Assembly (NCBI GenBank): GCA_965644315.1
Contig: CBFFRQ010000062.1
Location: forward strand, 434,001 to 498,000
DNA: 64,000 nucleotides
Source: Caecitellus pseudoparvulus
Taxonomy: Eukaryota; Protista; Bigyra: Bicosoecida
Reading direction: 5' to 3'
The translations under genes were made by a program, and so were the position numbers. The notes below the pieces were generated by a model. It did no database searches. It was given only the letters and a program-made list of their open reading frames with translations, and had not been told where the DNA came from. Shown here one piece after another: positions 8,153 through 44,303 of the stretch; position 1 is the stretch's first letter, and each line of letters opens with the position of its first letter.

Positions 8153-11100
8153 CTACTCAAAAGCCACCACTACAGCCAAGCCATGCTTCTCCTTCCCCTT
8201 GTACGCCCCCCATATGCCATCAAACCACTCACCTTCTCCATAGTCGTACAAACAGACCAGATGCCCAGGAACATGCGTCTTGATGTGCGCATCGATTGCA
8301 GCCCCATCTGCGTCTGCTGCCACGTCAAATGGAACCGCATGCACTGGCACCTCGCCGGTGTACGCCTGCAAGTTGGCGTCGTGCAAGGTTGTGTCGAAGG
8401 GAAAGCCTTCCTCAGTCGGCACCTTGTACACACGCAGAATGGGAACTGCGCTCACGTACACTCTGCAAGTACCACTCCACACGTGGCCCAGGACGGCTGG
8501 CAAGAACGCGTGCTGGTTGCGGGCAGCGATGGGTTCCCAGCCTCCGTTCAAGTCTTCATGGGCGACCACGACGTGCTGCCCCATGCCCAGCCCTCGGACC
8601 ACACGCAACAGCGCAGAACCAGACATCTCGCCAGCCTCGTCACAGACGTCGGCAAAGGGCACCTCCTCCACACGCGCTTCGAAGAGCCCGGGAGTCAACC
8701 ACGGTTGTGGGGTCTCATCTTGCACAAGCTCTGAAACGGTGAAAGTGGGCTGCGGGCAGCACGATGACGTGTCGCGCAAGGCAAGCACCAAGTTCGTCAA
8801 GCCAGCCAACGCGGCTCCGTTGTCGTCAGGCAATACTTGCCATTGGTCGTACCCGTCAGCGCGGAAGACGGCATCAACGAAGGAGTTGCCCTGGATGTCA
8901 GCCAGCGACCATCCGAGACACTCCGCCACCCTCGCCAAAAGCGGTGTTGAATCGCTAGCTGCAATGTCCCAATCGCAACGCTTCACATCATCACCCACCG
9001 GAACAAAGTCTGCGCTGCTGGCTGTGCCACTTTCGACAGACGTGGCATTCGGCTGCAGGTGCTGGACGTGGACTGACAGCGTCACCTTGGCCGGCGGCAG
9101 AGCTGCAGGCGGCTGCAGCAGAAGCTGGTCGCCCCACATCGGACCGTCTGGGTCAGAGCACAGTGCCAAGAACGCCCTGTGTTCAAGGAGCGCCCCATTT
9201 AGCTGCTTCAACTCAGCAATGACATTTTCAACGTCAACTGGCTTGCACAAGGTGTGCATGCTTGTCAATGCATCGCGAGCTTTGGAAGTGACTTTGCCAA
9301 TTCGAGAGGAAAGATTGTCCACAAAACCTTGCAAACCGTCCGAGTCAGGTGCACCGCCCGTTGGTGTGCAAGTTTGAAAGAAGCGGCAAGCATCAGCATC
9401 CAGCACTTTTGCACTCTTCACTGCCTCTCTTCCTTGCGTAACCGCTTCTTCGGCAGGATCAACGGTGCTAGGGACAGGGCCATCGGGGTGAATGGGCAAG
9501 ATCGGTCCGTCATCATCCGAATCAACGATGTCATCCGGAAGGGCTGGGGGATCGGTGATTCGGTTCGATGTTGAAGGGACATCGATGTCGCTTTGCGTGT
9601 CATCATCCGTCTCCAAACCAACAGGAGGCAGATCTTTCGTTTCTGAATCCACACTGCTCAGTTCGTCTTTCTTGAGGAACAGGACTCGGACACGGTACAT
9701 GCCAGCCACATTGGTGTCCTGCTGTGACAGCTGTGCGTTTCGCTTTGCTTGAGCTCGGGAGGCAGTCTGCATCAACTGGAACAGCCTGCCCTCAGCACGC
9801 CTGAGCTCCCGCATCAGCGAGGGCACGTGCAACAGCTGCAGTGGCTGATCGCCCGCGCCAGCATCTGTGCTGAACAACTTCAAGCAGAAGGTCCCTAATG
9901 TGTCGTCTTGCAAATCTCCCAGCCATCCCTTGATACCGTCTTGGGCTTCCAGGAACTCAAGCGGCGAGTTCTTTTGCATGTCCTTGGCCACTCGCTCCAA
10001 TGCTCCCAACAAGGAAGTGAGGCACTGCAATGTGACATTGATAGAGTCCGTGCTGCCATGTGCTGCCTCCACTTCACAGTCCTCCAAGCCTTGGCGGATC
10101 ACTCTTTGCACATTTGCGGGAAGTGGTTCACCGCTTAAGTCTGCTTCCTGCTTCCCTGGGACATCGGTCTTGTCAACAATCACTGGAAGCATCTCGATGC
10201 TGCTTCCCTTCAGATGATCGAAGGCAGGGTTCCACCGCTTCCCCCGTGTCGGACCCTGGCTGTCCATCAGGACTTGCAGCGTTGGCAGCGTGTCTCCACC
10301 CACTTCTGCTCGTGCAAGGTGCAGGAGTTCCTCAAGCTGGGCCACGAACTCCTTCTTTGTGATCCCTTTGCTCTGTCTTGCGATTATCTTCAGCACACGT
10401 CTGCCAAGTGATGGTTCTTCCTGTGTGCCCTGCTCTGCTGCTTGACCCTCTCCTCGAGCACGCTCCCGCCAGGCTTTCACATCCTCCCGCAGCAGCCGCG
10501 CCAGATTCCTGAGCTGTGACGTTCCTGGCTGAGCAGAGAGTGCAGGCACGCTTACGCCAGGGGTTTGAGCAGGGCTTGTACTCTCACGTGCTGCTCCACC
10601 AGTCTCTGGAATGCTGGGCAGCTCGAGTACCGACTCTTGGACTTCCTTGCGAGTCTGCAACGGCTTGTCGTCAGCTGGAAAATTCAGAGTTGCTCGTCCG
10701 GCAAGCGTGAAGGGGAAAAGCAGGTGGGCCAATTGTGTCGGGCGGAGATCGAACTTGCTGCGTGGCATGGGCGGCAACTTCATGTTCTGCCCGCGCTTGT
10801 ATCCCGGCGGCAGAAAGCGCTCCATCGCGAGTTCGCCCACTTTTGGCATTGGCAGCAGGTTTTGGGAAAAACGATACTTCTTACCACAGCCTCCCGTCTT
10901 GCCCCCTGCACGCCGCTGAGCTTCCTGTCGCCTCGCAATGTCGTCACTCGTCTCCTCTGTGTTGCGACCGCAGCGCGCAATGTCACAGCCTCCGCTCTGC
11001 GCCGCGAGTCTCCCGCAGTGAGGGCAAATGCTCGTCTTAATGCTGTACATCAGCATTTGCTGCTGCCACGCGGACGCCTCAACTGCTGCTGCCAGGGAGT

Positions 11101-14100
11101 CCGACAGGGCCGAGCCTGCAGTTTCGACTGCGGCGGCTCCAGCATCTGCTGTCCCGCGATCCACGGAGAAAGAACAGAGCACGGAGGCAAGCAGGCAGGT
11201 GGCTGTCTCTTCAGAACTTAAGCCGTGCATGGGCTTCACGAGTCCGTTAACGCCAGACAGTAGGAACCTCTGGGGTGCAAGGTCTTGCGCAAGAGTGGAT
11301 AGGGGAACGCCTGGTGCCTCACCGAGCATCCAGCATGACGCGTTCACGCCTCCATCTACCGAGGCGCGGACAATGCGTGCAAGTGGCTCCATGCCCAAGA
11401 TCATGTTCTGCGTCAGACAAAGCCGCTCTCGAAGCATGCGCATCGGAGCTGCCCCACTCATCTCACCTGCATGCTGTGGAAGCTTCACCATGTCTCTCAG
11501 ACGCAGCTGTACAGCACCCTCGCGTTGCCTTTCCTCAGATGCACGCAGCACGAAGTCCTGGATCGGTCTCTCAATTGCATCCTGCCTTCCACACACTGCG
11601 GTGAACTCCTGAAACTCCTCACGCAGCTCCTTCCAAGCATCCAAGAATGCCACGACAATGTTCAGACCGCGCTCTCGAACCGCTGCCGGCAGACGTGGGT
11701 CTCTAAGCACTACTTGCATGGTCACATCGTTGGCTTCAGTGTCCGTGAACAACAGGGCGGCTTCTTCCATGCACCAGTTGTACGCCTTCAACATCAAAGG
11801 GATGTGCTTGCTGAACCGCAGCGCCGCCCCACGGTCTGTGCTCGTCACCTCCAATGCAACTTCTGCCACATCTTTGAACTCGGAAGGCCGCTCAGTGTCT
11901 CGGCCTTGCGCAGCAGCCCCCGCACTGCCTGCAGGTTCATCGTGCAGTGCGACCAGGTCCAGATGTCTCAACTGCCCCGCAACTTCCTCCAGCTTCAGGG
12001 ACAGCGCCTGCTGAGCAGCACGAGGATTCTGCTCGTCCAGCATGCACTGCACCTCAAAGCTTGCCTTGCTGACGGCGTTGATCAGCACACTGAAACTCAA
12101 ACCAGCCACCCCATGGAGCTCCCGCACCTTCGCTTGGCGTGTGTCCTCCCCAGCTGCAAGTACAGCGTCACATGCAGCCTGAACCTGGGCTTGGGTGCTT
12201 TGGCTGGCCAGACTCACTGCACTCCATGCACCAAGGCCCAGGCTTGTCATAACACCATTCCGCGCCAGAAGCTTGGTCAGCGTTGCTATGTCTCCACTGT
12301 CGTGAGAAACGATGCGACAGAAGAGGAACGAAGCCCATGCTGGGCTGCTCTGCACAAGCCATTGGGTGCAAGCCTGCACCTCATCCGTGCACCAGTCCGC
12401 CACATTGCCATGCACGATGCACCTTGCCAAATCGTCACAAAATGCAACACACCGCTGCATGAAGCCGACCCTGTCGTACATGCTCCAAGCACGACCAGAC
12501 AAACCTGCCTGGTCTCCACACAAGTTCGTCGCTTGTGCTGAGAGTGCGTTCGTCTCAGCGGATCGTTGGAACGAGAAAAACCCTCCGACGACTCGCAGCA
12601 CCTGTGAGCCTTCATTGCTGTGTGCCATGTACGCGATCGGCGCACCTGCGGCACTCCCATCTGCTGAATCGCCCTGTATGTCAGAAGTGTACGATGTGCT
12701 GACCTCAATTGGCATGGGCCACCGGGAGCCTGGCAAGGCTTCCGCCAACACGGTGTGCAGAGCCTCTCTAGTACTATCGGCTGCATCTTCAGAAATACTG
12801 CACAGCAATTCCAGCAGTGCAACTCGGCCTGTCAGAGACAAGCACTCCGGATCGCCGAAGAGCACTGAGGGCGCCGTGTCCATCTCCCGCACTGTAGCAT
12901 TGGTGTGGCCCACAAGACCGCCAACCAAGGCCTGCAGTGCGCCAGCCGATGCAGGAAGGCTGTTCGCAGTTGAAAGCCACACCAGGACAGCAACGCAAGC
13001 GTCCCTGGCGGGCTCGATGAGCGGACCTTCGCGCAAACTCGCGACCTGCGCCAGAGCAAGCAATGCGAAGTCCAGCGCTGGCATGCTGTCGTATTCATGC
13101 TGGCATTCAACCAGGCACTCCGCAACTGTCTTTCTCAGTCGAGCTGGCACCCTGCAAAGCACCTCGAAGGATACGAGAAGTACTACACAAACCTGCAGAG
13201 TCCCGGGGAAGTACTCTTCAGCAGACTGGCCGCTCCGCAGGGAAAACTCGCGCAATGTTCGAACTTGTTCGACCCACTTGCACCACTCTTCCTCACTCTG
13301 CACAGCATCATCGATATCTTCTGCAAGCTTGCCCACTGCAGATCGTGCGATCTCAGCAGCGGCTGACTCCACCCCGTCACGCATGATTTCAGCCTTGAAA
13401 TCCTCCAGCTGCTCGTCACTCGACACTCCAATGAGTGAGCTGAGCATTGACTGCAGTGATACGCCCAGATTTGCGAGCATTGTCTTGAGAATCACAGGGG
13501 TGAGCACTGAGGCAAGTGGAACCTCTTGCTGACCCCTTAGACGTTCGATTTCAGTCGCACACCGACCTTTCAATGCAAAAGACACAAGCTCAAACTCCTT
13601 TGGAGACAGGCGCCGCTCAGACGTGGTCTGAACCCTCACACTACTCTCAGCGGGGCAAATGAAGCCCAGTGTGATGCGGATAAAATCCTGAAACCAAGCT
13701 TTTCGAGCTGCCTCGTTCTCCGCAAGCAGCTCCAAGGCTGGCTTCAAGAACGAGAAGCTTCCGGGCGCCTGCTGTGGAAGATCCAGTCGTCGAACTGCCT
13801 CACGGAGAGTGGCCGAAGGTTCACCTCCACTTGATATGCGCGAGGCATCAAGCAAATCAGTCATAGCTTCCATGAAGCTTGAGAAGCATGGTGTTGAGGG
13901 GGCCCAGGGCGACTGAGGAACCAAGTTCAGCGGGTAGAAACTGTGCTGCAGAGCTTTCTTGCGAATCACTTGCCTTGCAACCACCGACTTCAGGCACGTC
14001 GATGCAAACTTGGCTCCCCATACTGCAAGAGCGGCACTCTCCCACGCTGCAGAATCCGGCAAAGCGTTAGGGCTCAGGCCTGCGATGGCCTCCAAGCCGT

Positions 14101-17100
14101 AGTCTTGGCACAGGCTTGTGAGGACATCTGGGAGCATTTTGTTGAACAACCAGGTGATGCCATCGCGAATCTGCGACAAGACACTGCCTTTCATGCCATC
14201 CTCCACAACAGCATCAGCTGCATCGCGCAAGGCGGCTTGGGCTGTCTGATGCCAGAAACGCTGCAGCAGCTCACCCAAAGCAGCGATCAAATACGGTCGT
14301 GCCTTCACAATGTCAGCTAGTGTGCCTGGGCCAGCCCTGCCGTTTGAAACGAAAATCGAAGCTGTGTAGAATTCCGGAACGCGTTCAAGTCCTCTACTTC
14401 TAACTTCCTCCACCTTTGCCCGTTGATGCCTGAAGGTCACCCTCCGAGCAGCCTCGAGCACCAGGTCCTCAAGTGATGCTCTGAGCTCCTGGCCCGCATC
14501 ACAGCCGCCATCTGCACTCGGCAGCCCCATCGCAGCAGCAAGCCACTTGTGCGACTGCTCCCCTGGTCTGACCCCCAAGGCATCGCCCCCTTCGCCTTCC
14601 GCCACCACATCAATGCCATCAACAAACACGTTCTCCCAAGCTGATGACAGAGGTACGAAGTTGTACGCGGCTCCCAATGACGCCAGCTGCAAGGGGCTGT
14701 ACAGGATCATCACAACCGCCGGGGTGGGGATGCTCCTCCATGCCCTGCATGCCTCACTCTCACGCAAGCGAGTCTGGAACACGGCTCGACACGAGTCAAT
14801 GGCTTGGCGGACGACATTTACCTGGCTTGCTGTGTGACTGCCCATGTTCGCACACACGACCAAGGATGGCAGCTCTGAGTTGGGCTCGATGCAGCCCTGC
14901 TGGGCAACACGCAACGCAAGCTCGAAGAAGTCGCTGATCCTGTCCACGATGCCAGTGGAGCTGGACGCCTCTGACAGCGAGTACACGAAGGCCGACTGGG
15001 GCGCTACCGCGCCAGCTGCAGCTCCGTCAGCAGCCGCCCCGCCTCTAATGCCACCTTCCAAAGCTGCATGCCTGCTCAAGTCGAGTGACGCAAGAGACTC
15101 CACCCTGCAGCCAAGCAGGGCTGCAGCACTTGCACCGCAGCTCTCCAACTGGGCCACTCCTGAGCTGTGGCGCGCAAACACCATGAACTGACACGCAGAC
15201 GACACAGACTTTGAAGGTTCCCTGGTGGCTGACACTGCACGCTGCCAAGCTGTGCGGACTGAGTCAAGCAGGCCATGCAACAGCCGCTGCCCACTGAAGT
15301 GCTCCTGTCTCGCCACATACTCCGTGACGTACCGAGAAGGGAAGACGCCGTTGCGGTTGCCGGAGGCGAACGCACCAGCACGTGCCATCTGGAGCAGCTG
15401 CGCATTGCATGCATCCACATGCCTCTCCATGGATGCAAGCAAGCGCTTTGTCACAATACACTCAGGGCCTGCTTCTGCCCCTGCATCAGGGGCAGCAGCA
15501 GTGCTGTAGCCCACCACACCTTCCTCGCCTGCTGCTCCTGCCTCCGATGCTGAGGCAGGCTGCCCCTCGTCCCCTGAGCCGTCCATCATGCGGAACGGCG
15601 AGGGGACTTCAAAGTTTGTGTCCATGCTTTGCGTTTGCCGTAGCAGACGCAGAATCAGAGCGGGCACAGTCTCAGCTTCGGTGTACCCTTGGAACATCAA
15701 GGAAGGGTGTCCAGAGGCCACAAAGCCGGCGAACCTCTCAACCTCCTCCTCAAGGTGGTGGAAGAAGGCCTGCAGACCCGGCTTGTATCGGATGCCACTG
15801 AAGCACGGCGGGATGTGCTGGGGCAAGCTTTCAAGCTGGCTCCGCAGAGCGTCACGGGCAGACAGGACGAACTTGGAGAACCGATTCAGCAGCGGACTGG
15901 GCATGTGCCGAAGCTGACTCAAGGGCACATGCACAACAACCTTGAAGGCGGGGTGCACGTGCACTGGGATGGACATGGCGCCAATGGTGATGTCAGCGTA
16001 GTACGTCTTCTTGCCTTTGTACGTCGCAGAGCGGTAGTACCGGTTGAACACATCGTACAGCGCTGTGAACACAGACTGCGGGCAGTTCACGAGCAGAGCA
16101 GTTTCACCACTCCCCGCCGCTTGCTTGACACGGCGCAAGGTCTTCGCGATGTTCGTCGGGTTCTGGTCATCTGGGAAGTCACTCAGCGAGATCACCGTAG
16201 TCGCCCCACGATCCAGGATGCCCAGGTCAAACAGCATGTCCACGCCTGCCTCACAGTTGGACCGGTCCACCACCAGGGCGTGTCGGAAGTGGGCTTTGCT
16301 CGGGTCGCCCTCGTACTCCTGCCCCAACAGGTTGGAAAGAGACTCGAGTGCTGCCGGCTCGTACTGCCTTCCGCCTGCTTGGCCAGCTGCCCCACCGTGT
16401 GCTGCCCCACCACCAAGGCCGCCCAGTTGGCACTCGAGCAGGAAAGCCTCAACAAGGCGGCTGAACTCCTCACGGTCCCCTGCGATGCGGGACACTGTCT
16501 GCATGTTGCATCGGAGTCCTCCCACGAGCACATCGGCAGTCAGCCTGTGCAGCCCCGCATCCTGCAGCCTGTGCCGGATGTGGCGACACAAGTACACGAA
16601 GTCGCGCAGATGGAACCAACTAAAGAACCTGCCACTCAATGCATCACGCTGGGACTCAGCCTGGAAAGCTGCGCAGATGCCACGGACCAGCTCCAGCTGC
16701 CTTGACGTGTCTCCGTACTTCGGATGTGCCGACGTCAGCACTCCATCCACAAGCTCCTTCACCAGCTTGCGCGAGCCGTCCTTCAGCAACAGCTGCATGC
16801 CAAGAGTGACGATGTCCTTCTGCTGCACTTTGCCCTGACTGCAGTGCACGGACCGGTTGGTCTTTGCAGCGTCCAGCGTCGAGTTGGACAGCAAGATTGT
16901 CGGGGGGCCGTCCTTCTCCTCCAGCACATCGTGCAGAGCTTTCAGCGCTTGGCGGCGCTCCTTCGGCAACCCCGCCTCATCGATCACAACACACACACGA
17001 GTGGCGTTCCCAGGAGTTGATGCGATCCGCTGCCGCTGGATCGCACTCTGGTACACCTTCTGCAGCTCCTCAGAGGTGGTCACCTCGGAACACTGGTAGT

Positions 17101-28419: not shown

Positions 28420-28438
28420 ACAATGCTGTCCATGTGTT

Positions 28439-28531
28439 GCACCTGTGAAGAGAACTTTATTGGAGCTGTCCGATGTGCGGCCAACGAATGTTGCCGACAC
28501 TGACTGACGATTCTACGCTGTCTTGAGGTGC
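28439..28531 (+). ncRNA. Box C/D snoRNA type B, copy 1
   Basis: Box C GTGAAGA (28445); guide TATTGGAGCTG antisense to SSU CAGCUCCAAUA; D' CCGA; C' TGACTGA; D variant TTGA; terminal stem GCACC/GGTGC. Confidence 0.75.
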
Positions 28532-28545
28532 CCGTGTGCTCGCTC

Positions 28546-28634
28546 GCGCTTGTGAGGAAAATCTTATTGGAGCTGTCTGACTCTTGGTAATCTTATGCCA
28601 AGTTTACCTGACGATTCTACGCTGTCTGAAGCGC
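28546..28634 (+). ncRNA. Box C/D snoRNA type B, copy 2
   Basis: Box C GTGAGGA (28552); same guides as copy 1 (TATTGGAGCTG, GATTCTACGCTG); D' CTGA at 28577; D CTGA at 28626; terminal stem GCGCT/AGCGC. Confidence 0.8.
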
Positions 28635-28862
28635 TTTCGGCGACATGAACTTATCTTTCACCTGTGTCCTTTCGCAGGTTTTCCCCTTTGCAGCCGTGCG
28701 AGAACGCAGGCGCTTCGATGTGAATCCAAGAACACAATCAAATGCAGCATACAACTTACAATTACATGGTCGTCATACTTGGCTCGTCCACCGCACTTCA
28801 GGTGCTGCTGCAGTGTCGGGCAATCCCGAGCCAGCCAGGTGCGGAAATCGACTTGCTCAGCC

Positions 28863-31338: not shown

Positions 31339-31902
31339 GTTGGAGTGCGCAGGCTGTGTCCTGGCTCAGCTTCAATCTCAAGTCACTGACTGCGAATGCC
31401 ACGCAAGGGCACACCTAGACTTTGCACCACAAGAAGAGGTTGAGCCTGGCTTCCATCCAGCGTGCTGGGTTTCTTAAAAACAGATTTGACAGATTTGTGC
31501 ATTGGGTTTGCTGTTCATCGAGAGTCACAGTCTGTTGAATGATGTTGAAGATGCCAAGCATCGTCACTAGCAGTGCTTATCCCTCCAATGGGGATGGCTC
31601 TTTCAAACAGGGTTTCGCTTATTTGTGAGAAGAGGGCTCGCTTGCTCCACAGCTGCTTCTTTCTGGTTGATCGTGACCATGAACCCACCCAGTCATTTGA
31701 ATTCAAGGAACCGGGAGAGCAAGGCCATCACCGCGTCATGGAAACCTCCACGACTTTCATGCCAGCATTTTTCGCGACCCGGAACGAAGTGGGCGTGGCC
31801 GAACGCGAGCATTAACAGCCCCTAGTTGAATTTGAACTGGGAACAGAGTCGGTATAGTTCGGGAGCGTGGAGCTACGTCACCACATCTTCGTCTTGCAAC
31901 GA

Positions 31903-34900: not shown

Positions 34901-37900
34901 TGCACTTCCCCCTGACTGCAGTGCACGGACCGGTTGGTCTTCGCAGCGTCCAGCGTCGAGTTGGACAGCAAGATTGTCGGGGGGCCGTCCTTCTCCTCCA
35001 GCACATCGTGTAGAGCTTTCAGCGCTTGACGGCGCTCCTTCGGCAACCCCGCCTCATCGATCACAACACACACACGAGTGGCGTTCCCAGGAGTTGATGC
35101 GATCCGCTGCCGCTGGATCGCACTCTGGTACACCTTCTGCAGCTCCTCAGAGGTGGTCACCTCGGAACACTGGTAGTGCTCAATCTGCATGTGTGGGAAC
35201 CTCCGCAGCACTGCGCTCTGTGAGCTCCGACCAGCGAAGTTGTCGGCCACGATCATCACTGCCATGGTCTTCCCACACCCTGGTGGGCCCGTCGTCAAGA
35301 CGTTGAAGGTGGGCGTCACACACACAGCCAGGCTTGCTGTGAACACTGCTTCCTGCATGGGCGCTGTCTCAGCCAGGCCATCTGGCCGCTTCTTGATCTC
35401 CGAGAACAAGTGCTCCATGGCCCCGTTCAACGTGTTCTGCAGCTCGCCATGCACCAAGTCAGGCTGTCCCACGCCGTCCATGGCGGCCAAGAACGCTAAG
35501 CGGTAGGAATCGTGTCCATTCACGCGTTCAGCTTCGACTCGACTTGGCAAGCGCAGCAAGTAGCACACTGCAATGGACACCAGCAAGGACTGCTTCAACA
35601 AGTCACGCAGGAACTGCACACTGTCTTGGTCTGTCCTGAGGCTCGGCTTGGGCAAGAAGGGGTTCACGGAGACTTCTTGCCCGGCCACCTTCTCACCTGT
35701 GCGCACTCCGGCCTGCAGGAGCCATGCCGCGAGGTCCACACACCGCACGAGGTCTCGGAGGGACACGTGAATGCGCCGCAGTCCAAAGCGCCGGACAGTC
35801 TCCTGGGCTTTGAGCACAAGCCTTGCCGCCATCTGCGCGAAGCCTTCCAATGCCCGCTCATGCTGCTCCTTCACTCCCCGTGTCACTTGCCCAACGTGAG
35901 GCAACTGCCAAGCCTTCTGCTCCACATACATGCGCAAGAACGCCTCTTCATCCTCAGTCTGCAGATCAGGCGCCGCCTTCTCCATCGTGCGCATGGAGGC
36001 TGGGAGGTACTTCACGATGAATGGAGCGTATGCATCCTCACCGTCCTCGCCATCCTTGCTTCCTTGTCGTGTCGATGGCGCATCAGGTGGCGGTGCAGCT
36101 TGACCTGCGCCAGCTGCCGCTTGTGCGCTCTGCACACGCGTGTAGTCCACCACTCCCTGTGCCTGCCGCCGAAGCTGCCCCCTCATGGCCTTGGGGTTGA
36201 TCGTGCCCACGAAGTACAGGTTTTCGGGCAGTTTACGCCCGTTCACGGAGTGCTGTGTGAACGCCTCACATACGATGCCGAGGTCCCCTGCCGTGTCCAG
36301 CTCATCCACGGACACACACATGGTCAGCTGGGCAGATGCAGCAGTGTGTCCTGGTGCTCGCCGCACAGACTCTTCGGCGTCGGCAAGGGTGGCTTCGATT
36401 CGCTTCAGCTCTGCTTCCCACTTGGATGCAGTCATGCCAGCGTGCATGAGCACACGGCTGTACAGCGTCGCCGTCTGGCTGGTGAACACTGACTTGAACA
36501 CCACCCGGAAGTCCAGCCTCTGTGAGAATGTGTCCGTGCCGGCTGCCGCAGGTTGCGCCGCCCCTGGCTCTCCAGCTGCCGCTGCCCCTGCTCCAGCCCC
36601 GCCAACACTCTGCCCTTGCTTGCTCAGCTCCTCCACCACCGAACTGACAGCATCAAAGGTCACCCTCGTCTCCGTCATGTGCTTGACGAGCTCCGCCACG
36701 TCGGCCACACGGCCCTGCGTGTGGAAGTAGTTGAAGTTCTGCTGCAGCCGCTCCCTGTGTGCGGCTGGGATGCCAGCAGCCTGCCGTGGATACTGCACCA
36801 GTGCCAGCTGGATCAAGATGGGCACTTCGTCAAACAGCTTGTTCTGCAGCTCCTCAGATGCGTGGGACTCGAACACGTCCATGACATGCTCCAGATCCAC
36901 GACACGTGGGTCGTTTGTCAGCTCCACTCTCTCCCATGACGGAGACACTGGAGGCACATTCGTGACCTGCACCGTGATCAAGTCAGGGGACACCTCATAC
37001 GTCGCACCCTTGATCCGCAGGATGCCGGACAGGGCCGCGATGTCACTGCTGACAGCTTCGATGCTGCGCCCTTCCAACTGCAGCTGGCGCAGTCGAGCTT
37101 GCAGCCTGGGCAAATTCACACGCGCGAAGGCACGCAACGCAGTGACCAGGAACAAGGACATGTCAAACAGGACATCATCACGGGAGTTGCGCAGGAGGCT
37201 GTACATGTTCACCAAGAAACTCTTGCACACACCTGTGTCGCCTGCAAGCACCATGGAGTTGCCCGACACGCACCAGTCATGCAGCTCCAACATGCGCAGG
37301 GAGTCCCGAAGCGCCAGCACGAAGTTGTTGCGCTCAAGCAGTGGACGCAGCAGTGCAGTGTCTCGCATACCGAAGGCTGGCGCGATCCCAGCTCGCAGCT
37401 GTGCCATGTTGAATCCACCTTGTCCGTCCTGAGCGTCTGAGCTCAGGTATGTGACCATGTTGTCAGAGCCAGGAGCCAAGCTCAGGGTCCGCATCAGCGT
37501 CTTGGCTTCCTGCAGCGTACATGTCGACGGATACACAACGAGGACTCTGAAGTCGAAGACGCCTCCGACAGGTTCAGGGGACTCCACCGGTGTCGGCCGG
37601 ATGGTGGCGACACGCAACCCACCATGGAACATCCCACACGTTGTAGCGACCTCGTAAATCATGAACGACAGCATCTCGTACCAAAACGAAGCCTTGGCAC
37701 ATTCATGCCTGATTGATGATTGACTCGGATTCTTCTTGGCGGTGTCGCTCATGGTCTGCAAGTACTTCAGTCGGGTTTCCAGCAGCTTGGCCATCTGCAC
37801 GACCAAGCGCAGGTTCACATCAGCTGCGCCCCTCAAGAAAGGGTGCTCCGCAAGCGCAACAGCAAGTATGTCTCGCAAGGCTTCATCGCCCAGGCGATCC

Positions 37901-40900
37901 GCCAAGCCTTCCATGCTTGGAAGGAACTTCGAGCTCCGGATCTCGGCACAGGCGTCAGCGAGGCAGCGGCAAGCATCGCCTCCGCAGCCCTGTGCGTGCA
38001 TGTGCAGGCCAAGCCCCACAGCACACAGTCGGAGTGTCGGGTCCATGTGCAGGTCGCCCATGTTGACGACCCGCATGGAGTCGCGCCATTTCACAGCCAA
38101 GTGCCCGTCCAGCTCGGCCAGAAGTGGATGGGACGCTGCACGAACACCACCGCCCGCGCCTGCACTGGGCCAAGCTTCCCGAGCCGGGAACTCCGTCTCG
38201 CCCAGTGCTGGCAGCTCCATGGCGACGTGAAGCTGGACTGAACAGTCGAGAACACATGCCTCACCTGACTGCATGTCACGCAGAAGTCCCAGGCTGAACA
38301 TGTCAAACAAGCACTGCGACAACTGACCCACGTCAGCCTGCTCAAACACGTCAAAGTGCATCCACACACGGCCGCCGCTTTCTCCCAGCCCCTGCACTAC
38401 TTCCTTGTACTGCCAGATCAGATGGGACACGGTGAACCCTTCGTGCACTGGGACACGAATGAGCTTCGCGCCATCAGCTTCGCAGCTCCTGGAAATGTGG
38501 AATGACTTGCCACTTCCAGGCCCGCCGGCCACCAAGTCTGCTCCAGATACGTGGCGAGCTCCCGCAGCCTGGTGCTGTGCTGCCCAGCTGAGGGATCGCA
38601 GCTGGTTGACGCTGGCCGGCACTGGCTCCTTCTTCCACCAAGTATCAGCTGCTGGCGCGACAAACTGACGCATGCCCACCACATCGCCAAATAGCAGGTA
38701 CACTTCCACTGAGAGGTCTGGCGACTGCAAGCACCGGTTCAATGCATCTCGTGCCACCGCGGAGAGACGATCCACCCCCAGGCAGTAGACAGCAGGAGCA
38801 AATGGGGCCTTGCTGCACAGCATGCGCCCCAGCCACTCAATGTCTGCAACAGTCGCGTCAGGGTCACAACGATATAGCTGACTGGGATGCAGGGGCGCGC
38901 CCACTGATGCGTGGTGCTCCAGCGCCTTGTGGCACATGTAGTGCAAGGACTTGCCTCGCAGCAGCACCACCGACACCGCACCTGCATCTTCAGGAACCGC
39001 GCCCACATCCATTGCCCGTGCCAGTACACCTGCCGCCCAGGGCAAGCATCGAGCGACCTCGTCAAAGCCACCAGTGGCCTGTGCCTCCAACTTCTCACAC
39101 ATGGCTTGCTGTGCCAAAGCGTCCATGGCGGGATAACACAGCATGGCATATGGCAGCAGTGCTTGTACGGCCTTGCGTGGCTCATACTGCGTTCCCGCGA
39201 AGCCCTGCAGCGCCTGACTGAGGCCAAGCAGCAGCTTCGGCGTCAGAGCACTCAGTGCAGGGCAGTCATACAGTGCCTCCTCTGTGCCCCCTCGCCACGC
39301 ATCAAGCTGGGCCTCCAAGAGCTCAAGTCGATTCCTCACCTTGTCCACAATGCTTTCTGCTGAGTCAGTGTCCACTTCGTTCAAGGGCACTGCAGCGCCA
39401 CCCGGCTGATACTCGGGGTGACCAGCGCTGGCCAGCTCAAGGTGCACCTTGTGAGCTTCCTCTGCGAGATCATATGCAGCAAGGATGTGCTGCACAGCGT
39501 CGCCATCGTCATCACCTGACTCCCCCACGACCTGCGCATTGGTGATGTTCTCCAACAACTGATCGGGTGTCCACGGCACCCTCGTACCACTCGTTTCGCC
39601 TCCAATGGCGTACGAAAGTGAAATGCCACTGCGGTGCCCCGTCTCGTCGAGAATGGACACGAACTGACCTGTCCCACTGATCTCACGGTGCAGCAGCAGG
39701 AGGTTGGAGTTTGCTGCTTCCCGGTTGGCGCGCTGCAGCGCAGATGCTACACGCTCCCAGTTATCCACCAGCGCCTTGATCTCACCCACCAACGCCTCAG
39801 CAACGGCGCCTCGAGTGCTCCGTGCTCCACTCCCACTGGCATCCTCCCGCGATGCTCGTGAAGTGATCACCCCATCCACAGCCCTCACAAGGTCCACAAT
39901 GGACACTTGAGCGGCCCCTGCTCCCTCCGCTGCCATGCCACCTCGAGCGAGTGGGGAAGCCTGGCGGGCTGGCAGTACAGCCTCAGCAAGCTGCCGCAGT
40001 GGCGGCAGGTGCCGCAGAAGCCCTTGCAAGTGGGTGTCAGCGGTTGATGCTTGCAAGGCCAGCTCGAACTGACCTGCATAGTCCTCGCTGTGCTCGTCGA
40101 GGTACTGCATGAAGTCTGACATGGATGGCAGTGCCGCGATGACCTGCATGATCGCCAGATCCAGCCCGCCGAGCTCGGCACTGATGTTGGCCAGGGCGGC
40201 CTTTACCTGACTCACCTTGGCGCTTTGTGCCCTCCGGATCGGAGCACAGGCCACCTCCACATCACGGCACCCCAACACTCCCAGTGCTTCCCTGAAAGCG
40301 CCCAACGTGTCTTGCATGCGCAGCAACTCAGTCGCTTGCCGCACGTTCGCCACCTGCGTCTGGAAGACACTCGGCCGATCCGACGAAGACCCACCTTGGT
40401 CGTCGTTGAAGAAGCTGGAGATGGCGGCAAGCTCGCGCCCAAAGTGAGCACCACGTGGCAAGTCGTCGCCACCCCCCATTCCCTGCGTGCCAGACCTGCC
40501 CAGCTCAGACACCTTCTGGTCACCCATGTTCAGCAGCTTCTTCAACCCTTCCAGGACTGCCTCGATCGCTGCATCCCAGCCACGGCCGGTGTGACGTTGG
40601 CCTGCCAGTCGCCGCGTAATGGCTTCCCGCACAAGTCGATCGCGGAACAGTACACTCTTGTGGTCCATGAAGTGCTTCAGCGCCCTGAACGATGTCTCAG
40701 ACAGCACCACTCCACCTTGCTGCAGCTCAACAAAGTTCAGCCAATCCCTCACGGTGGAACCATCATCTGGTGGTGGAGCAGCGTCTCGTGCTTGGCCGGC
40801 ACCAGCTCCGAACAGAGTCAGCTCCGAGTACCACAAAGCCATGGCTCGCAGGGACTGTACCTTCGCTTTCGCGTTTGTAAGGGTAGCCAGTCTATCTCGA

Positions 40901-43812
40901 ACAAGTATTGACACTTGATCTTCCTTCGTCAGTGCGATGCCAAGCACTCGCTGCAGCTTGGCATCCTCGGCCAAAGTCTGCAGGTCGTGCACAGTGACAG
41001 AATTATCGGAGAGGGATTCCTCTATCGTATCCATGCACTCTTGCACGTACTCCCACACAAGCGACACGACGTCGGACAGGCTGCAACTCTCATCATCATC
41101 ATCATCGTCATCGCCATCATCCTGGGTCTGGCAAGCCACCCTCTGAACATTCAAGACAGGCAATGGCTTCCCGCCAAACTCCTCGTCCACAGACGCGAAA
41201 AGTCCGGTCCCCTCCATTGTACTCAGATGCATGCACACTTCATCAAACCCAGCCACACGGAGCAGCACCCACGGATTCGACCGTGGCAGCTCAAGCAGGG
41301 CAGCCACGCCCAGCATCAAGCGTGGCAGACATGCCGTACGCCGCTCACTGCCTCCACAGCCATCTTGAGTCAGCAAATTCATGATGGCGCGACCCTGTGA
41401 CTTCCCTTCTTGTGCAGCCCACCAATGGCGTGACAGGCGACCAGCAACAGCCGCAGCGAAAATTATGTACGCCCACGGCAGGCGGCCTGCCTCAGACCTC
41501 ACCTGGACCTGCTCAGCGGCATGCAGAGCCCTCATTGCCTCGCCATCAACACCAGCATGCTCGTGCGATCCCGCACACTTGCAGATTGTCTGGCAGCTGG
41601 TGTCCAGCACTCGGGCCAGCTCCGCTTCGAAGGCTTCAGACTGGGCTGCGCTTGTGGATGGCGTGAACACCTCCCGTGACAGCTCCACCACACGCTCGGA
41701 CAGCAGCAGCAAGTGTGTTGCGGTGAGAATGCGGTTGCTGAACCGTGAGCGAGCGGGGGCGCGCCGTGTGTTGGGAGGGAGGTTGGCCTCAGCACTGGCC
41801 AGCCAGGTCTCCAGGCACAGAAGCAAGCACTGCTGCTTGGATGGCGGGTCTTGTCCACGGGAGCACGTGGCCGCAACGACCAGTCCTGCGCCTGCTGCAA
41901 AAGCCACCAAGTCCCCTCCAGCACCGGAGCGAGCCTCGTACACACAGCAGTAACTGTAGAAGTGCCACATCCACTGTCCAACGAAGGCACACCTTTCCTC
42001 CAACGTGGGACACCGACTAGCCACCTGAATGGCCGAAGCAGGCGTCATTCCTACCATGCTACTGGGCTGCGCGGCAGATTCGCCAACAGCCGTCGCAAGC
42101 CTGTCATACCAGGCTTCCTGCTGCCAGGCCTCGGCGCTGCCGCTGGCCCCAAGCCAGGTCTCCATTTCACGAACGAAGTTGGCCGCGTGGTCTTCAGGAA
42201 CACCAAGGTGTGCCCCACGCAGCATGTCACGGAAGGCTTCACCACAGGCTTCAACCTGTGGAGCTGCTGACCCTGGGCCGACCTCCACAGCAGCACCTTC
42301 AGCTGCAGCATGGCCTCCACCTCGGCTCCGGGCCAGAGATTGCCCTAGCCCTTGCAGAGCCTCGGCCAAACACACCACATCGTCGCGTGCAAGGACACCC
42401 AGTCCAAACACGGTTGCGACAAGCCTGCGCATGTACTCCACGCGTGACTCAGCATCGGTGTTGAGCAAGATGCCTACAAAGGCGGGTTCAGCCAGCAGAG
42501 CCTGCAGCTCAGCCCACTGGACCCGCAAAGTCTGTCCAGCACTGCAAGCAGCCTCGAAGCGCCGCACGACAGCATCGAACATTGGAAGAAGTAGCTCGCC
42601 TTCAGGGAGGGAGAGGTGTTGCACACGCGCAAGAGCAAACAGGCAGCCCAGGAACTGTGCTGGCGCAAAGCCGGCGTGCAGCGACATGAAGTCTACCTGT
42701 GGCTCAAGCATCATAACCGTAACCAAGTCTTGGCTCGCGCTCTGATCCTCGAGCAAACCACACTTCTCCATGGACGCGCGCACACAGAAGAATACCAATG
42801 TCACAGCCAGCAGCTGGCGAGGAGTTCGCGACAGCACACGCTCGCCGGCACCTGTTGCTCGTTGCGGAAACAATATGCTGTACAGCGAAGCATCAAGAAC
42901 CTTCAAGGTATCGAGTTCTCCCAAAACTGCTTCTGCGATAAGCCTCAGCGCTGCTTCACAGGCGCTGCCATCTGGACCCAGCACTAGGGTCTCCATGTTC
43001 TGCAGCCACAGTGTGTGCGCAGTTGCTCCAGCCACAGCCGCACCTCGCAGCTTGGACCCATGCTGCTTGGCCAAGTCGGACATCTGCCCTGCAGCAAGCA
43101 CTGCCGGCAAGATCCTGATGTGCAGCATGAGGTTTCCACTTGTGCTGGGGCGCTGCAGGATGTCACTCAAGAGCTCACCGAGGGCGAGTGCACTTGAGGC
43201 GGTCTCCTCAGACGAAGGGCTATAGTAGCAAGCGTCAAGAGCCCACTTGCAGCGCTGGGAAATGCCGAGTACGGAACTCTGAAAAGCAGCATCGGGAGCA
43301 CATGCAGCCTCGAGCCACTGGCAGAGGTCGAGCACTGAGGTATGTGGCTGCCTGGCCTCAGTTGCCGCTCCCAAGGCGTTCAGAACGGACCCCGGTTGTT
43401 CAGAGGGCGTTGAGTCAGCACCATCTGATGCAGCACCCACTCCCAGTGCGGAGGGAATAGCAGGGCGGCCGCCTTCCTTCCTCGCGTACTTCCACCCCTT
43501 CCCAACGCGAAACGACCACAACCCATCCGCAGTCTCCCATTTCTTGTTGGTGAGAGTAATTGGGCCATACACTGACTCTAGCTGTTGAGTCAAGCGCCCT
43601 GTTCGAGGGTCGACGGCGTTGGAACTCGTGGAGCCGATGTACGCGTTCAGTTCATGGCAGAAGTTGAAGACTTCCTTGGTGCTCCCAGATCCCCATGATA
43701 CTGAGTACAGGACACGTCCATCTGTGTCAAGGAACCTTCCTCGAGTCTGGTCGAAGCGCACGCCGCGATGAAGCCCTCCTTCTTTGCCTTGCCCAGAAAC
43801 GGCCCAGGCCAT
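31903..43812 (-). CDS. RNF213/mysterin-like AAA+ ATPase, copy B (3,969 aa), lacking the putative E3 region
   Basis: Uninterrupted ORF paralogous to 8153-25714. The AAA motifs are present, while copy A 8747-14473 is replaced in frame by 54 nt (32497-32550). Confidence 0.85.
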   Translation of the reverse strand: MAWAVSGQGKEGGLHRGVRFDQTRGRFLDTDGRVLYSVSWGSGSTKEVFNFCHELNAYIGSTSSNAVDPRTGRLTQQLESVYGPITLTNKKWETADGLWSFRVGKGWKYARKEGGRPAIPSALGVGAASDGADSTPSEQPGSVLNALGAATEARQPHTSVLDLCQWLEAACAPDAAFQSSVLGISQRCKWALDACYYSPSSEETASSALALGELLSDILQRPSTSGNLMLHIRILPAVLAAGQMSDLAKQHGSKLRGAAVAGATAHTLWLQNMETLVLGPDGSACEAALRLIAEAVLGELDTLKVLDASLYSILFPQRATGAGERVLSRTPRQLLAVTLVFFCVRASMEKCGLLEDQSASQDLVTVMMLEPQVDFMSLHAGFAPAQFLGCLFALARVQHLSLPEGELLLPMFDAVVRRFEAACSAGQTLRVQWAELQALLAEPAFVGILLNTDAESRVEYMRRLVATVFGLGVLARDDVVCLAEALQGLGQSLARSRGGGHAAAEGAAVEVGPGSAAPQVEACGEAFRDMLRGAHLGVPEDHAANFVREMETWLGASGSAEAWQQEAWYDRLATAVGESAAQPSSMVGMTPASAIQVASRCPTLEERCAFVGQWMWHFYSYCCVYEARSGAGGDLVAFAAGAGLVVAATCSRGQDPPSKQQCLLLCLETWLASAEANLPPNTRRAPARSRFSNRILTATHLLLLSERVVELSREVFTPSTSAAQSEAFEAELARVLDTSCQTICKCAGSHEHAGVDGEAMRALHAAEQVQVRSEAGRLPWAYIIFAAAVAGRLSRHWWAAQEGKSQGRAIMNLLTQDGCGGSERRTACLPRLMLGVAALLELPRSNPWVLLRVAGFDEVCMHLSTMEGTGLFASVDEEFGGKPLPVLNVQRVACQTQDDGDDDDDDDESCSLSDVVSLVWEYVQECMDTIEESLSDNSVTVHDLQTLAEDAKLQRVLGIALTKEDQVSILVRDRLATLTNAKAKVQSLRAMALWYSELTLFGAGAGQARDAAPPPDDGSTVRDWLNFVELQQGGVVLSETSFRALKHFMDHKSVLFRDRLVREAITRRLAGQRHTGRGWDAAIEAVLEGLKKLLNMGDQKVSELGRSGTQGMGGGDDLPRGAHFGRELAAISSFFNDDQGGSSSDRPSVFQTQVANVRQATELLRMQDTLGAFREALGVLGCRDVEVACAPIRRAQSAKVSQVKAALANISAELGGLDLAIMQVIAALPSMSDFMQYLDEHSEDYAGQFELALQASTADTHLQGLLRHLPPLRQLAEAVLPARQASPLARGGMAAEGAGAAQVSIVDLVRAVDGVITSRASREDASGSGARSTRGAVAEALVGEIKALVDNWERVASALQRANREAANSNLLLLHREISGTGQFVSILDETGHRSGISLSYAIGGETSGTRVPWTPDQLLENITNAQVVGESGDDDGDAVQHILAAYDLAEEAHKVHLELASAGHPEYQPGGAAVPLNEVDTDSAESIVDKVRNRLELLEAQLDAWRGGTEEALYDCPALSALTPKLLLGLSQALQGFAGTQYEPRKAVQALLPYAMLCYPAMDALAQQAMCEKLEAQATGGFDEVARCLPWAAGVLARAMDVGAVPEDAGAVSVVLLRGKSLHYMCHKALEHHASVGAPLHPSQLYRCDPDATVADIEWLGRMLCSKAPFAPAVYCLGVDRLSAVARDALNRCLQSPDLSVEVYLLFGDVVGMRQFVAPAADTWWKKEPVPASVNQLRSLSWAAQHQAAGARHVSGADLVAGGPGSGKSFHISRSCEADGAKLIRVPVHEGFTVSHLIWQYKEVVQGLGESGGRVWMHFDVFEQADVGQLSQCLFDMFSLGLLRDMQSGEACVLDCSVQLHVAMELPALGETEFPAREAWPSAGAGGGVRAASHPLLAELDGHLAVKWRDSMRVVNMGDLHMDPTLRLCAVGLGLHMHAQGCGGDACRCLADACAEIRSSKFLPSMEGLADRLGDEALRDILAVALAEHPFLRGAADVNLRLVVQMAKLLETRLKYLQTMSDTAKKNPSQSSIRHECAKASFWYEMLSFMIYEVATTCGMFHGGLRVATIRPTPVESPEPVGGVFDFRVLVVYPSTCTLQEAKTLMRTLSLAPGSDNMVTYLSSDAQDGQGGFNMAQLRAGIAPAFGMRDTALLRPLLERNNFVLALRDSLRMLELHDWCVSGNSMVLAGDTGVCKSFLVNMYSLLRNSRDDVLFDMSLFLVTALRAFARVNLPRLQARLRQLQLEGRSIEAVSSDIAALSGILRIKGATYEVSPDLITVQVTNVPPVSPSWERVELTNDPRVVDLEHVMDVFESHASEELQNKLFDEVPILIQLALVQYPRQAAGIPAAHRERLQQNFNYFHTQGRVADVAELVKHMTETRVTFDAVSSVVEELSKQGQSVGGAGAGAAAAGEPGAAQPAAAGTDTFSQRLDFRVVFKSVFTSQTATLYSRVLMHAGMTASKWEAELKRIEATLADAEESVRRAPGHTAASAQLTMCVSVDELDTAGDLGIVCEAFTQHSVNGRKLPENLYFVGTINPKAMRGQLRRQAQGVVDYTRVQSAQAAAGAGQAAPPPDAPSTRQGSKDGEDGEDAYAPFIVKYLPASMRTMEKAAPDLQTEDEEAFLRMYVEQKAWQLPHVGQVTRGVKEQHERALEGFAQMAARLVLKAQETVRRFGLRRIHVSLRDLVRCVDLAAWLLQAGVRTGEKVAGQEVSVNPFLPKPSLRTDQDSVQFLRDLLKQSLLVSIAVCYLLRLPSRVEAERVNGHDSYRLAFLAAMDGVGQPDLVHGELQNTLNGAMEHLFSEIKKRPDGLAETAPMQEAVFTASLAVCVTPTFNVLTTGPPGCGKTMAVMIVADNFAGRSSQSAVLRRFPHMQIEHYQCSEVTTSEELQKVYQSAIQRQRIASTPGNATRVCVVIDEAGLPKERRQALKALHDVLEEKDGPPTILLSNSTLDAAKTNRSVHCSQGEVQQKDIVTLGMQLLLKDGSRKLVKELVDGVLTSAHPKYGDTSRQLELVRGICAAFQAESQRDALSGRFLSWFHLRDFVYLCRHIRHRLQDAGLHMLTADVLVGGLRCNMQTVSRIAGDREEFSRLVEAFLLKCQLGGLDGGAAHGGAAGQAGGRQHEPAALESLTDLLGQKYEGDPSKAHFRHALVVDRSNCEAGVDMLFDLGILDRGATTVISLSDFPDDQNPTNIAKTLRRVKQAAGSGETALLVNCPQSVFTALYDVFNRYYRSATYKGKKTYYADITIGAMSIPVHVHPAFKVVVHVPLSQLRHMPSPLLNRFSKFVLSARDALRSQLESLPQHIPPCFSGIRYKPGLQAFFHHLEEEVERFAGFVASGHPSLMFQGYTEAETVPALILRLLRQTQSMGTHFEVPPPFRMMDGSGDEGQPASASEAGAAGEEGVVGYSTAAAPDAGAEAGPECIVTKRLLASMERHVDACNAQLLQMARAGAFASGNRNGVFPSRYVTEYVARQEHFSGQRLLHGLLGSVRTAWQRAVSATREPSKSVSSACQFMVFARHSSGVAQLESCGASAEALLGCRVESLASLDLSRRAAVEGGIGGGAAADGAAVGAVAPQSAFVYSLSEAPSSTGIVDRISDFFELALHVAQQGCIEPSSELPSLVVCANMGSHTASQVNVVRQAIDSCQAAFQTRLRESEACRAWRSIPTPAVVIILYSPLQLASLGAAYNFVPLSSAWENVFVDGIDVVAEGERGDASGVRPGEQSHKWLAAAMGSPSADGGCDVGQELRASRKGASRQGVIGGAVCQKATFTVLELVQDETPQPWLTPGLFEARVEEVPFADVCDEAGEMSGSALLRVVRGLGMGQHVLVAHEDLNGGWEPIAARNQHALLPAVSGHLWSGTCRVYVSAVPILRVYKVLNEEGFPFDTTLHDANLQAYSGEVSVHAVPFDVAADADGAAIDAHIMTHVPGQLVCLYDYREGDWFDDIWEACEGKEKHGLAVVVTSE

Positions 43813-44303
43813 CCTGCGAAGAGATTACGAGGCGAAAAATGTCTACAGCTCGCTGCTTGTGCATGCTGTCCTCTTCACTGTGCCAGTGAACACCATACTG
43901 CCCTGTGCGATGAGCAGCAATGCGCACCAGCGAATAGCGCCAGTACATGCGATAATCAGGACCAGTGCTTGCCACATACGCAAGATGCACACACTGCCAC
44001 ACCAAGCACGCCGCAAACACGTCCATGTTACACACCTGACTTGGAGCGAGGTAGATCTACCGAGGGCGCCTCTTCTTGGGCCGCCGGTGGCTGGAGATGT
44101 TGGTGCGAGTGCGGAGCTTGCACTTCACCCTGCACGCGATGCGCAAGAGCTGCCCACAAGCCGGACCGATCGTGGTGCCAACCACGAGCAGCACGCAAGC
44201 GTAAAAGAAATCAAACTTGTCAGCTGATTCACCCACACTGCTGGTGTGCGGTGAGAGTTTTGAATTGTGGGGATGGTGTGAGGTCTGCGTTCCACCACGC
44301 CAA
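31903..44303. repeat. Segmental duplication unit B
   Basis: Homologous to unit A, with an offset of about 18,080 nt across the core. Confidence 0.95.

Follow-up and report, generated by a model that had tools for sequence, protein, structure and literature searches.

What does a bicosoecid flagellate do with two giant genes related to RNF213, one of which lacks a long internal part of the other? The question is raised by a stretch of 64,000 nucleotides from Caecitellus pseudoparvulus (GenBank assembly GCA_965644315.1, contig CBFFRQ010000062.1, positions 434,001 to 498,000 of the forward strand; hereafter the window, with positions counted from its first letter), in which the two genes are designated A and B below. 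RNF213 of animals has an ATP-dependent E3 activity on lipopolysaccharide (LPS) or pathogen compartments, and the initial annotation of the window presented A and B as a candidate system of cell-autonomous immunity made up of an E3-armed and an E3-less copy. According to our analysis, the two genes are best explained as young duplicates of the RNF213 type, with A as the full-length member and B as a deleted but constrained, ligase-less form; we assign to this explanation a probability of roughly 60%.

The window contains two giant open reading frames (ORFs) on the minus strand, and the ORF list together with blastp indicates that they are paralogous. The mechanical ORF of A spans 8153-25906 (5,917 aa). 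The Met at residue 65 of this ORF (nt 25714) aligns with Met1 of B, and the start of A was therefore placed there as the likely one, so that residue r of A begins at nt 25714-3(r-1). The two genes, the blocks which they share and the segment in which they differ are as follows:

8153-25714, minus strand: gene A, full-length RNF213-like giant AAA+ protein of 5,853 codons plus stop, 17.6 kb
31903-43812, minus strand: gene B, paralogue of A of 3,969 codons plus stop, 11.9 kb, without A residues 3748-5652
14473-26206, minus strand: duplicated block 1, A copy, ~490 nt upstream plus codons 1-3747 (blastn)
32550-44303, minus strand: duplicated block 1, B copy, 94.8% identical to A's 14473-26206 (blastn)
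8125-8758, minus strand: duplicated block 2, A copy, last 201 codons plus 28 nt past the stop (blastn)
31875-32508, minus strand: duplicated block 2, B copy, 92.4% identical to A's 8125-8758 (blastn)
8759-14472, minus strand: A-only segment, residues 3748-5652, with the putative C-terminal domain (CTD)-like domain and Rcat-like finger inside; absent from B
32509-32549, minus strand: deletion junction in B, ~41 nt of filler (~14 codons), reading frame kept

The same-strand giant paralogues described by the initial annotation are thus present at 17.6 and 11.9 kb. The blastp comparison of A residues 1-3747 with B residues 1-3754 gave 93.7% identity over ~3,750 residues, and that of A 5653-5853 with B 3769-3969 gave 89%. 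Both giant genes are intronless, though introns occur in the rest of the genome. The extents of the two blastn blocks indicate that the duplicated unit comprised the gene, ~490 nt upstream of it and only 28 nt past its stop; the end coordinate 44303 given in the initial annotation is the end of the duplicated upstream block. Together with the genome survey described below, these comparisons identify A and B as the products of a recent local duplication in a family of six giant single-chain AAA+ proteins that are distant kin of animal RNF213.

B corresponds to A from which 1,905 internal codons (5.7 kb) have been removed in frame; in their place stands an unrelated filler that has no match elsewhere in the window. 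The region up to approximately residue 5028 of A is present in the four other paralogues of this genome and in the outside relative P0001; as all of them align with A up to this point, the block was lost in B and not gained in A. These alignments trace B to an A-like copy through one in-frame internal deletion of 5.7 kb with filler. B kept the N-terminal arm, the AAA ring and, at its end, the final 201 residues of A, and lost the whole C-terminal post-ring module. In this respect the intact but ligase-less copy described by the initial annotation is borne out, since the ORF of B is intact and the missing 1,905-residue block carries the only candidate ligase element of A.

Such a structure could in principle be produced by the assembly, with B as a collapsed or chimeric join of reads from one gene. 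The family does seem hard to assemble, as several paralogues lie on short contigs. However, A and B are located 6 kb apart on one contig (C62) with unique genes between them, and block 1 differs at 611 aligned positions over 11.7 kb, with the indels in frame. Moreover, the C-terminal block has its own, separate divergence of 7.6%, and the junction holds a unique filler instead of a clean join. We therefore regard an artefact as very improbable.

The state of B can be judged from its divergence from A. The ratio of nonsynonymous to synonymous substitution rates (dN/dS) between the two genes was 0.33 over 3,948 aligned codons (bootstrap 95% confidence interval 0.28-0.39, maximum 0.42); it reached 0.49 in block 2 (last 201 codons), and no block exceeded 0.5. 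The synonymous divergence (dS) between A and B is ~0.10. Neutral evolution of B from the split onward would give a pairwise dN/dS of at least 0.5, even with A perfectly constrained. As the estimate and the bootstrap maximum both lie under this floor, B is not neutral, and the decay to neutrality that the initial annotation had named as a reason for abandoning its proposal was not found. In B, 3.4% of random substitutions would make a stop codon, and none is present among the 534 block 1 differences in aligned codons; all indels between A and B are in frame. With P0001 as the outgroup, at sites where it matches one of the copies, 16 derived residues were counted in B vs. 6 in A (p = 0.052). At conserved sites B has thus changed ~2.7 times faster than A, including the substitutions F2495S and N2500D in the AAA3 Walker B strand. 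Taken together, these values indicate that B is under purifying, somewhat relaxed, selection.

The similarity between the two copies is distributed as a patchwork. The dS values vary from 0.011 to 0.32 per 250 codons, the divergence of block 1 ranges from 0.4 to 22.6% per 500 nt, and identical tracts extend up to 431 nt vs. a simulated 99.9th percentile of 235 nt. From this pattern we infer that A and B have exchanged sequence by gene conversion. The patchwork also bears on an explanation that takes B for a functionless young duplicate about to become a pseudogene, with a deletion that fell in frame by chance and an ORF that has been held open mainly by repeated conversion from A. The conversion-like identical tracts agree with this, as do the faster change of B at conserved columns (16 vs. 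6, with two invariant AAA3 Walker B positions among them) and the 3' flank, which was duplicated for 28 nt only. Nevertheless, even the upper bootstrap bound of 0.42 stays under the 0.5 expected for one neutral and one perfectly constrained lineage, and the first 500 codons, where dS is ~0.3 and conversion is little, have a dN/dS of 0.35-0.43 and no stop. In addition, the indels are all in frame, the 41-nt filler keeps the frame, and the upstream 490 nt were copied with the gene. A dying B appears unlikely on these grounds, and we prefer to regard B as a constrained form of the family.

The affiliation with RNF213 is founded on the AAA core. Pfam recognized in A and B only generic dynein-type families (AAA_7, AAA_5, and AAA, around the GPPGCGKT loop). 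A single-sequence phmmer search of A against all chains of the Protein Data Bank (PDB) returned RNF213 only, at E 1.5e-26. The family profile, constructed from A, four paralogues, and P0001, matched RNF213 at E 7e-40 in four collinear stretches, namely the AAA3 Walker A (weak), the AAA3 Walker B, AAA4, and AAA5; p97 came next, at E 0.004, through its P-loop alone. In the AAA3 Walker B stretch, the family reads ...DELNT where human RNF213 reads ...DEANT, and the AAA4 module matches RNF213 as a whole (independent E value, i-E, 2e-19). The initial annotation had described a dynein-like core with more than a dozen RNF213-type motifs in order. Four collinear stretches could be verified; the dozen or more motifs could not, nor could a likeness to dynein beyond the Pfam families. 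Dynein and midasin were also considered as the nearer kin of the core, and no chain of either was found at E<=0.1 in the PDB profile search, so that the resemblance to RNF213 stands. The landmarks of the ring are located as follows:

20423-20446, minus strand: P-loop GGPGSGKS, A 1757-1764, AAA2 site by position; same motif in B at 38503-38526
19139-19162, minus strand: AAA3 P-loop GDTGVCKS, A 2185-2192, aligned to RNF213 GETGCGKT (the weak stretch)
18215-18238, minus strand: AAA3 Walker B CVFVDELN, A 2493-2500; F2495S and N2500D in B, at family-invariant columns
17189-17212, minus strand: AAA4 P-loop GPPGCGKT, A 2835-2842, identical in B (35266-35289)
16970-16990, minus strand: AAA4 Walker B VVIDEAG, A 2909-2915, identical in B
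15878-15892, minus strand: LLNRF, A 3275-3279, vs. RNF213 LINRL, at the end of the AAA5 stretch (i-E 6e-11)

The Walker A and B motifs of AAA4 are canonical and do not differ between A and B; in AAA3, the Walker B of A is unaltered and that of B is changed beside the DE. The AAA3 P-loop carries a Cys in both A and B. All other members of the family, as well as P0001, read GDTGVGK at this position, which indicates that the ancestor of A and B exchanged the conserved Gly before the Lys for Cys. Outside the AAA ring, the PDB sequence and profile searches gave no sequence similarity of A to RNF213. In particular, the C-terminal 2,107 residues of A had no PDB match by sequence, and residues 1-2936 contained no Pfam family other than AAA, so that no CBM20 was seen by sequence.

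The part of the protein behind the ring was examined with structure prediction as well as with profiles, and two features were delimited in it:

10658-11890, minus strand: helical domain, A 4609-5019, with a predicted fold similar to that of the human RNF213 CTD, residues 4758-4979
10859-11041, minus strand: IBR/Rcat-like zinc finger, A 4892-4952, with C4897, C4900, C4910, C4915, and C4943

An AlphaFold (AF2) model of A 4579-5090 (512 residues) was obtained from a 30-sequence alignment, with a mean predicted local distance difference test score (pLDDT) of 77.8. Foldseek gave nothing significant for this model (the RNF213 match had E 6.3), and it and the wide VIA search listed generic helical bundles only. 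The RNF213 CTD emerged solely in the VIA-align second look, where the human RNF213 E3-module map 9jwg_A was at the top with Z 8.6. This match superposed 218 of 411 model residues on 222 RNF213 residues with a root-mean-square deviation (rmsd) of 4.2 A, and the next match had Z 5.0. Because the fold match is collinear with the AAA match, we read the helical domain as CTD-like; the assignment is suggestive rather than conclusive.

The initial annotation held A to be armed with an E3 module in the manner of RNF213, and this claim has to be given up. Neither a Pfam RING (at E<=0.01) nor a C3HC4 pattern (by regex and Cys/His density) was detected in A, and there is likewise no sign of an RZ finger, with no zinc-finger Pfam family in A and, at A ~4100-4580, the region collinear with the animal RZ finger, no Cys/His cluster conserved across the aligned family. 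What A contains instead is a putative IBR/Rcat-like finger. Among the 127 cysteines of A there is just one CxxC in 5,853 residues, and it opens this finger at 4897-4943; B has no CxxC. The pattern consists of a long helix, CPxC, 8-9 residues, (G)C, 4 residues, CG, a variable loop, GCG, and a conserved NRVPxP, in which C4910 of A occupies the position of the Rcat catalytic Cys.

The finger motif is preserved in every full-length paralogue and in the majority of the ~20 homologues whose alignment spans it. When the PDB was searched with profiles at permissive thresholds, chains of RING-between-RING (RBR) ligases covering RING2/Rcat or IBR accounted for 23/26 and 3/5 of the matches (parkin, HHARI/ARIH1, HOIL-1, and fly parkin; best E 0.06-0.2). 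The printed HMMER alignments place the GC of the family on the catalytic GGC, and its conserved Cys on the catalytic Cys of parkin and HHARI. The Pfam families IBR_1, IBR_2, and IBR match 9/24, 9/24, and 6/24 homologue segments, respectively, with a best E of 2.2e-5 for IBR_1. A separate model of A 4850-5018 (169 residues, mean pLDDT 80.9) points in the same direction. RBR chains are contained in its Foldseek listing, and in the VIA second look all chains at Z>=2 were RBR (parkin IBR and Rcat, HOIL-1, RNF216, ARIH2, and HOIP), in compact alignments with an rmsd of 1.2-2.7 A over 32-53 residues and Z <= 3.4. The wide VIA search of this model was dominated by the long helix. The ESM Atlas gave no usable match by features; by shape, the matches were only weak, two IBR clusters at TM ~0.2 among them. 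RZ-containing chains were absent from every finger search. On the basis of the profiles and models we conclude that the finger is probably an IBR/Rcat-type module. The architecture of A obtained in this way, by alignment and modeling, has a long N-terminal arm followed by an AAA ring of the RNF213 type and then by a C-terminal module, in which the Rcat-like finger is inserted in the CTD-like helical domain. For the last ~750 residues of A (5101-5853; 8156-10414), no relative could be detected in either the paralogues or the set of 50 homologues, and only the final 201 residues are common to B.

Several points weigh against our interpretation. Gene conversion can depress the apparent dN/dS and hold a dead copy open, and in view of the mosaic the dN/dS argument is not airtight. 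The Cys that replaced the conserved Gly in the AAA3 P-loop means that the ATPase cycle of A and B may differ from that of RNF213. The Z of 8.6 for the CTD-like domain is under the caution line of the tool, which is ~13 for helical folds. As for the finger, the copy in A itself is below every Pfam IBR threshold and misses two His of the finger of its paralogues; two paralogues (C197 and C184) have Ser at the putative catalytic position; and each of the Rcat matches is individually non-significant (E 0.06-0.2; Z <= 3.4). The second look at the finger was confined to Foldseek's own 109 best chains and is thus not an independent search. Finally, A has no RING1 to recruit an E2.

These last points lead to a different view of the family, as an RNF213-like AAA+ machine that is not a ubiquitin ligase. 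The finger would then be a structural zinc module of the IBR type, and B would have lost a regulatory or targeting module. Besides the missing RING1, no other E2-binding RING is present. The IBR shares the Rcat fold without catalysis, and the fold matches include the parkin IBR (residues 328-369) besides Rcat; the Ser of the two paralogues and the missing Pfam IBR match of A fit this view as well. On the other hand, the printed alignments are to RING2/Rcat, with a near-invariant Cys of the family on the catalytic Cys, and this Cys is conserved in at least 90% of 24 sequences. The missing RING is also of limited weight, since RNF213 itself functions without its RING (PMC8567218). A non-ligase family is possible, though on the unlikely side.

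We favor the ligase interpretation and infer activity through C4910, as a reasonable step beyond the results themselves. Under this interpretation, the full-length members would be ATP-regulated transthiolating ubiquitin ligases, in which the conserved finger Cys (C4910 in A) would carry out the transfer and replace the RING and RZ arrangement of animals. B would represent a ligase-less ATPase or scaffold form, which either modulates or co-assembles with the full-length members or is slowly heading to loss.

The position of A and B within their family was established from the whole assembly (30.6 Mb, 215 contigs). The genome-wide count of paralogues, which the initial annotation had recommended, gave six members: A, B, and a second subfamily of four. 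The members of this subfamily are 88-92% identical to one another and ~27-28% identical to A over the aligned region (~40% in the AAA4 segment). They are designated here by their contigs:

C57, 438613-457515: paralogue of 6,300 aa
C197, 28844-42334: paralogue of 4,496 aa
C184, 17764-31833: paralogue of 4,689 aa
C173, 17150-29287: paralogue of at least 4,045 aa, cut by the contig end

No telomere repeats were found at the end of C173 where the paralogue is cut. C197 and C184 match the first ~100 residues of C57 and then pick up at its residue 1849; the difference from C57 is an internal block of ~1,740 residues in the N-terminal arm. Judging from these alignments, members of the family repeatedly differ in length by large internal blocks, with the termini spared, and this weakens the case for a purpose-built A/B pair. 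Three of the four members of the second subfamily are located on contigs of 29-53 kb, which could be haplotigs or hard-to-assemble recent duplicates.

Beyond this genome, a word-based homologue search with the AAA region retrieved one relative only, P0001. An exhaustive profile search with the C-terminal region yielded 50 relatives, including four giants: those of Mallomonas annulata (P0004, 5,680 aa) and Chromera velia (P0044, 5,753 aa) and the metagenomic P0009 and P0013. All four giants align collinearly with A, starting at the AAA2 P-loop and extending through the CTD-like domain. P0004 and P0009 have the finger, P0013 has part of it, and none was detected in P0044. The shorter homologues are C-terminal fragments with the same architecture. 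The named homologues in the databases are labeled "uncharacterized" or "hypothetical" (the Chromera velia entry is an "Uncharacterized protein"), and our full-text literature searches found no account of RNF213-like proteins from outside the animals, nor of such proteins with an Rcat-type finger. We regard the family as an undescribed protist branch of the RNF213 family.

With this background, the proposal that A and B are partners in a dedicated immune pair of the sensor/effector or decoy/regulator type, comparable to paired immune receptors, can be considered. Its basis is homology to RNF213, an immune E3 of animals, and a ligase-less copy could in principle join coats of the RNF213 type. 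Such coats grow through the cooperative incorporation of monomers; the AAA activity of RNF213 is always required, and its RZ ligase activity is needed on bacteria only (PMC11549300). In B the N-terminal arm, the ring, and the final 201 residues have been retained under constraint. The recent expansion to six members, the large block differences, and the patchwork similarity also agree with the proposal and add a little to it. Against it, A and B are not arranged head-to-head, share no promoter, and are separated by three unrelated genes, and no window has a dN/dS >1. Furthermore, photosynthetic algae carry homologues as single uncharacterised proteins. A second set of full-length and shortened members occurs on other contigs of the same genome, and general turnover of the family fits this better than a designed pair. 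The paired-receptor reading of the initial annotation is accordingly unsupported, with A and B being local duplicates with unrelated genes between them and one pair among six members, and we consider a dedicated immune pair quite improbable. An immune role of A and B is possible by analogy with animal RNF213 only.

A broader scenario would be that of an old RNF213-like lineage with an Rcat transfer finger in the CTD-like domain, in which B tunes A as part of a cell-autonomous defence of protists. The lineage would be the one represented here by one stramenopile, one alveolate, and a number of metagenomic eukaryotes, and the RING and RZ of animals would be a later replacement or derivative. In the present flagellate it would have turned into a set of several genes with rapid turnover, in which B is maintained and co-assembles with A on intracellular targets. 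We regard this scenario, too, as rather doubtful, and the more restricted interpretation, i.e., young duplicates with B as a constrained, ligase-less form, is retained.

Of the genes that the initial annotation placed between A and B, two were confirmed by Pfam, and both lie outside the duplication:

26147-28171, plus strand: PSMD3/Rpn3
30096-31070, minus strand: AAGAB-like (Adaptin_binding)

The PSMD3 ORF matches the TPR_PSMD3_N profile from position 105 onward, and the N-terminal part of the gene is for this reason probably located in an upstream exon. The "hypothetical" ORFs between A and B had no Pfam match. The proposed cluster of small nucleolar RNAs (snoRNAs) could not be substantiated, as Rfam returned no match for it and a scan for the canonical C box, RUGAUGA, was negative. 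Right after the PSMD3 stop, at 28170-28690 (plus strand), two pairs of ~95-nt direct repeats lie in a stretch bounded by GT..AG. Read by eye, they carry the variant C-box-like motifs GUGACGA and GUGAAGA as well as CUGA, and these repeats could be divergent C/D snoRNAs.

Two further ORFs were noticed elsewhere in the window. The first, at 44706-50606 (minus strand), encodes 1,966 aa in a stretch of 70% GC and has a C2 domain of the RPGRIP1 type. RPGRIP1 is a protein family of the ciliary transition zone, and such a gene fits a flagellated organism. The second, at 54094-59454 (plus strand), encodes 1,786 aa and combines a response-regulator receiver with IQ motifs, SAM, and ankyrin repeats, an unusual architecture for a eukaryote.

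To our knowledge, RNF213 has been studied almost only in vertebrates, and its mechanism of ubiquitin transfer is still under study. A protist branch with an RNF213-type AAA ring and a CTD-like domain, and with an Rcat-like finger instead of RING plus RZ, would reveal which parts of the RNF213 machine are ancestral and in what way its catalytic element was swapped. The intronless genes may serve as useful smaller comparators for structural work. B, under selection beside its full-length parent, would represent a natural ligase-less variant and a test of what the ATPase and the arm do without the ligase; we know of only engineered mutants through which this question has been approached in animals.

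Comparison with known systems places these proteins between several familiar groups. Dynein heavy chain and midasin are also single-chain rings of six AAA modules, and share with A the Pfam families AAA_5 and AAA_7 at the AAA4 P-loop. However, no chain of either appears at E 0.1 in the search in which RNF213 scores 7e-40. The paired sensor/helper NLRs (nucleotide-binding leucine-rich repeat receptors) of plants resemble A and B in being nearby paralogous ATPases of the STAND/AAA type, one of which is without a module of the other. In contrast to them, A and B are on the same strand and not head-to-head, with three unrelated genes between them, and there is no integrated decoy, B differing by loss.

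The RZ finger of RNF213 and ZNFX1 consists of a zinc knuckle pair with a nucleophilic Cys between, has a short helix before it, and acts by E2 transthiolation (PMC11549300; bioRxiv 10.1101/2025.10.14.682297). The putative finger of A follows the same layout logic. Nevertheless, the zinc ligands of the RZ finger are C-x3-H ... C-x2-C, with the His as a general base (PMC11549300), whereas the finger described here has C-x2(-4)-C ... C ... C, and its matches are to IBR/Rcat. The Rcat/RING2 of the RBR E3s (parkin, HHARI/ARIH1, HOIL-1, HOIP) has the same succession of CPxC, 8-9 residues, (G)C, 4 residues, and C, with a helix before it. Unlike these enzymes, A has neither a RING1 nor a separate IBR, and so no tripartite RING1-IBR-Rcat module but one finger only. 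The second zinc site of Rcat is missing in it, a variable loop of 15-30 residues, which is helical in A, lies between the fourth and the fifth Cys, and the finger is set in an AAA+ protein of 5,000-6,000 residues.

The closest counterpart is animal RNF213 itself. In comparison with it, A is without RING, RZ finger, and CBM20 by sequence, has ~250-300 more residues between the Walker A and Walker B of AAA3, and carries the IBR/Rcat-like finger inside its CTD-like domain, at a place where nothing comparable exists in the human protein. Nevertheless, both are giant single polypeptides of similar length with collinear landmarks; the AAA4 P-loop Lys, for example, is residue 2841 in A and residue 2775 in human RNF213. 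P-loops occur in A at the AAA2, AAA3, and AAA4 positions, and the sequences match over the AAA3 Walker B, AAA4, and AAA5 (E 7e-40). The C-terminal helical domain of A resembles RNF213 4758-4979 (Z 8.6), and near the C-terminus A has, like RNF213, a candidate Cys-based transfer element.

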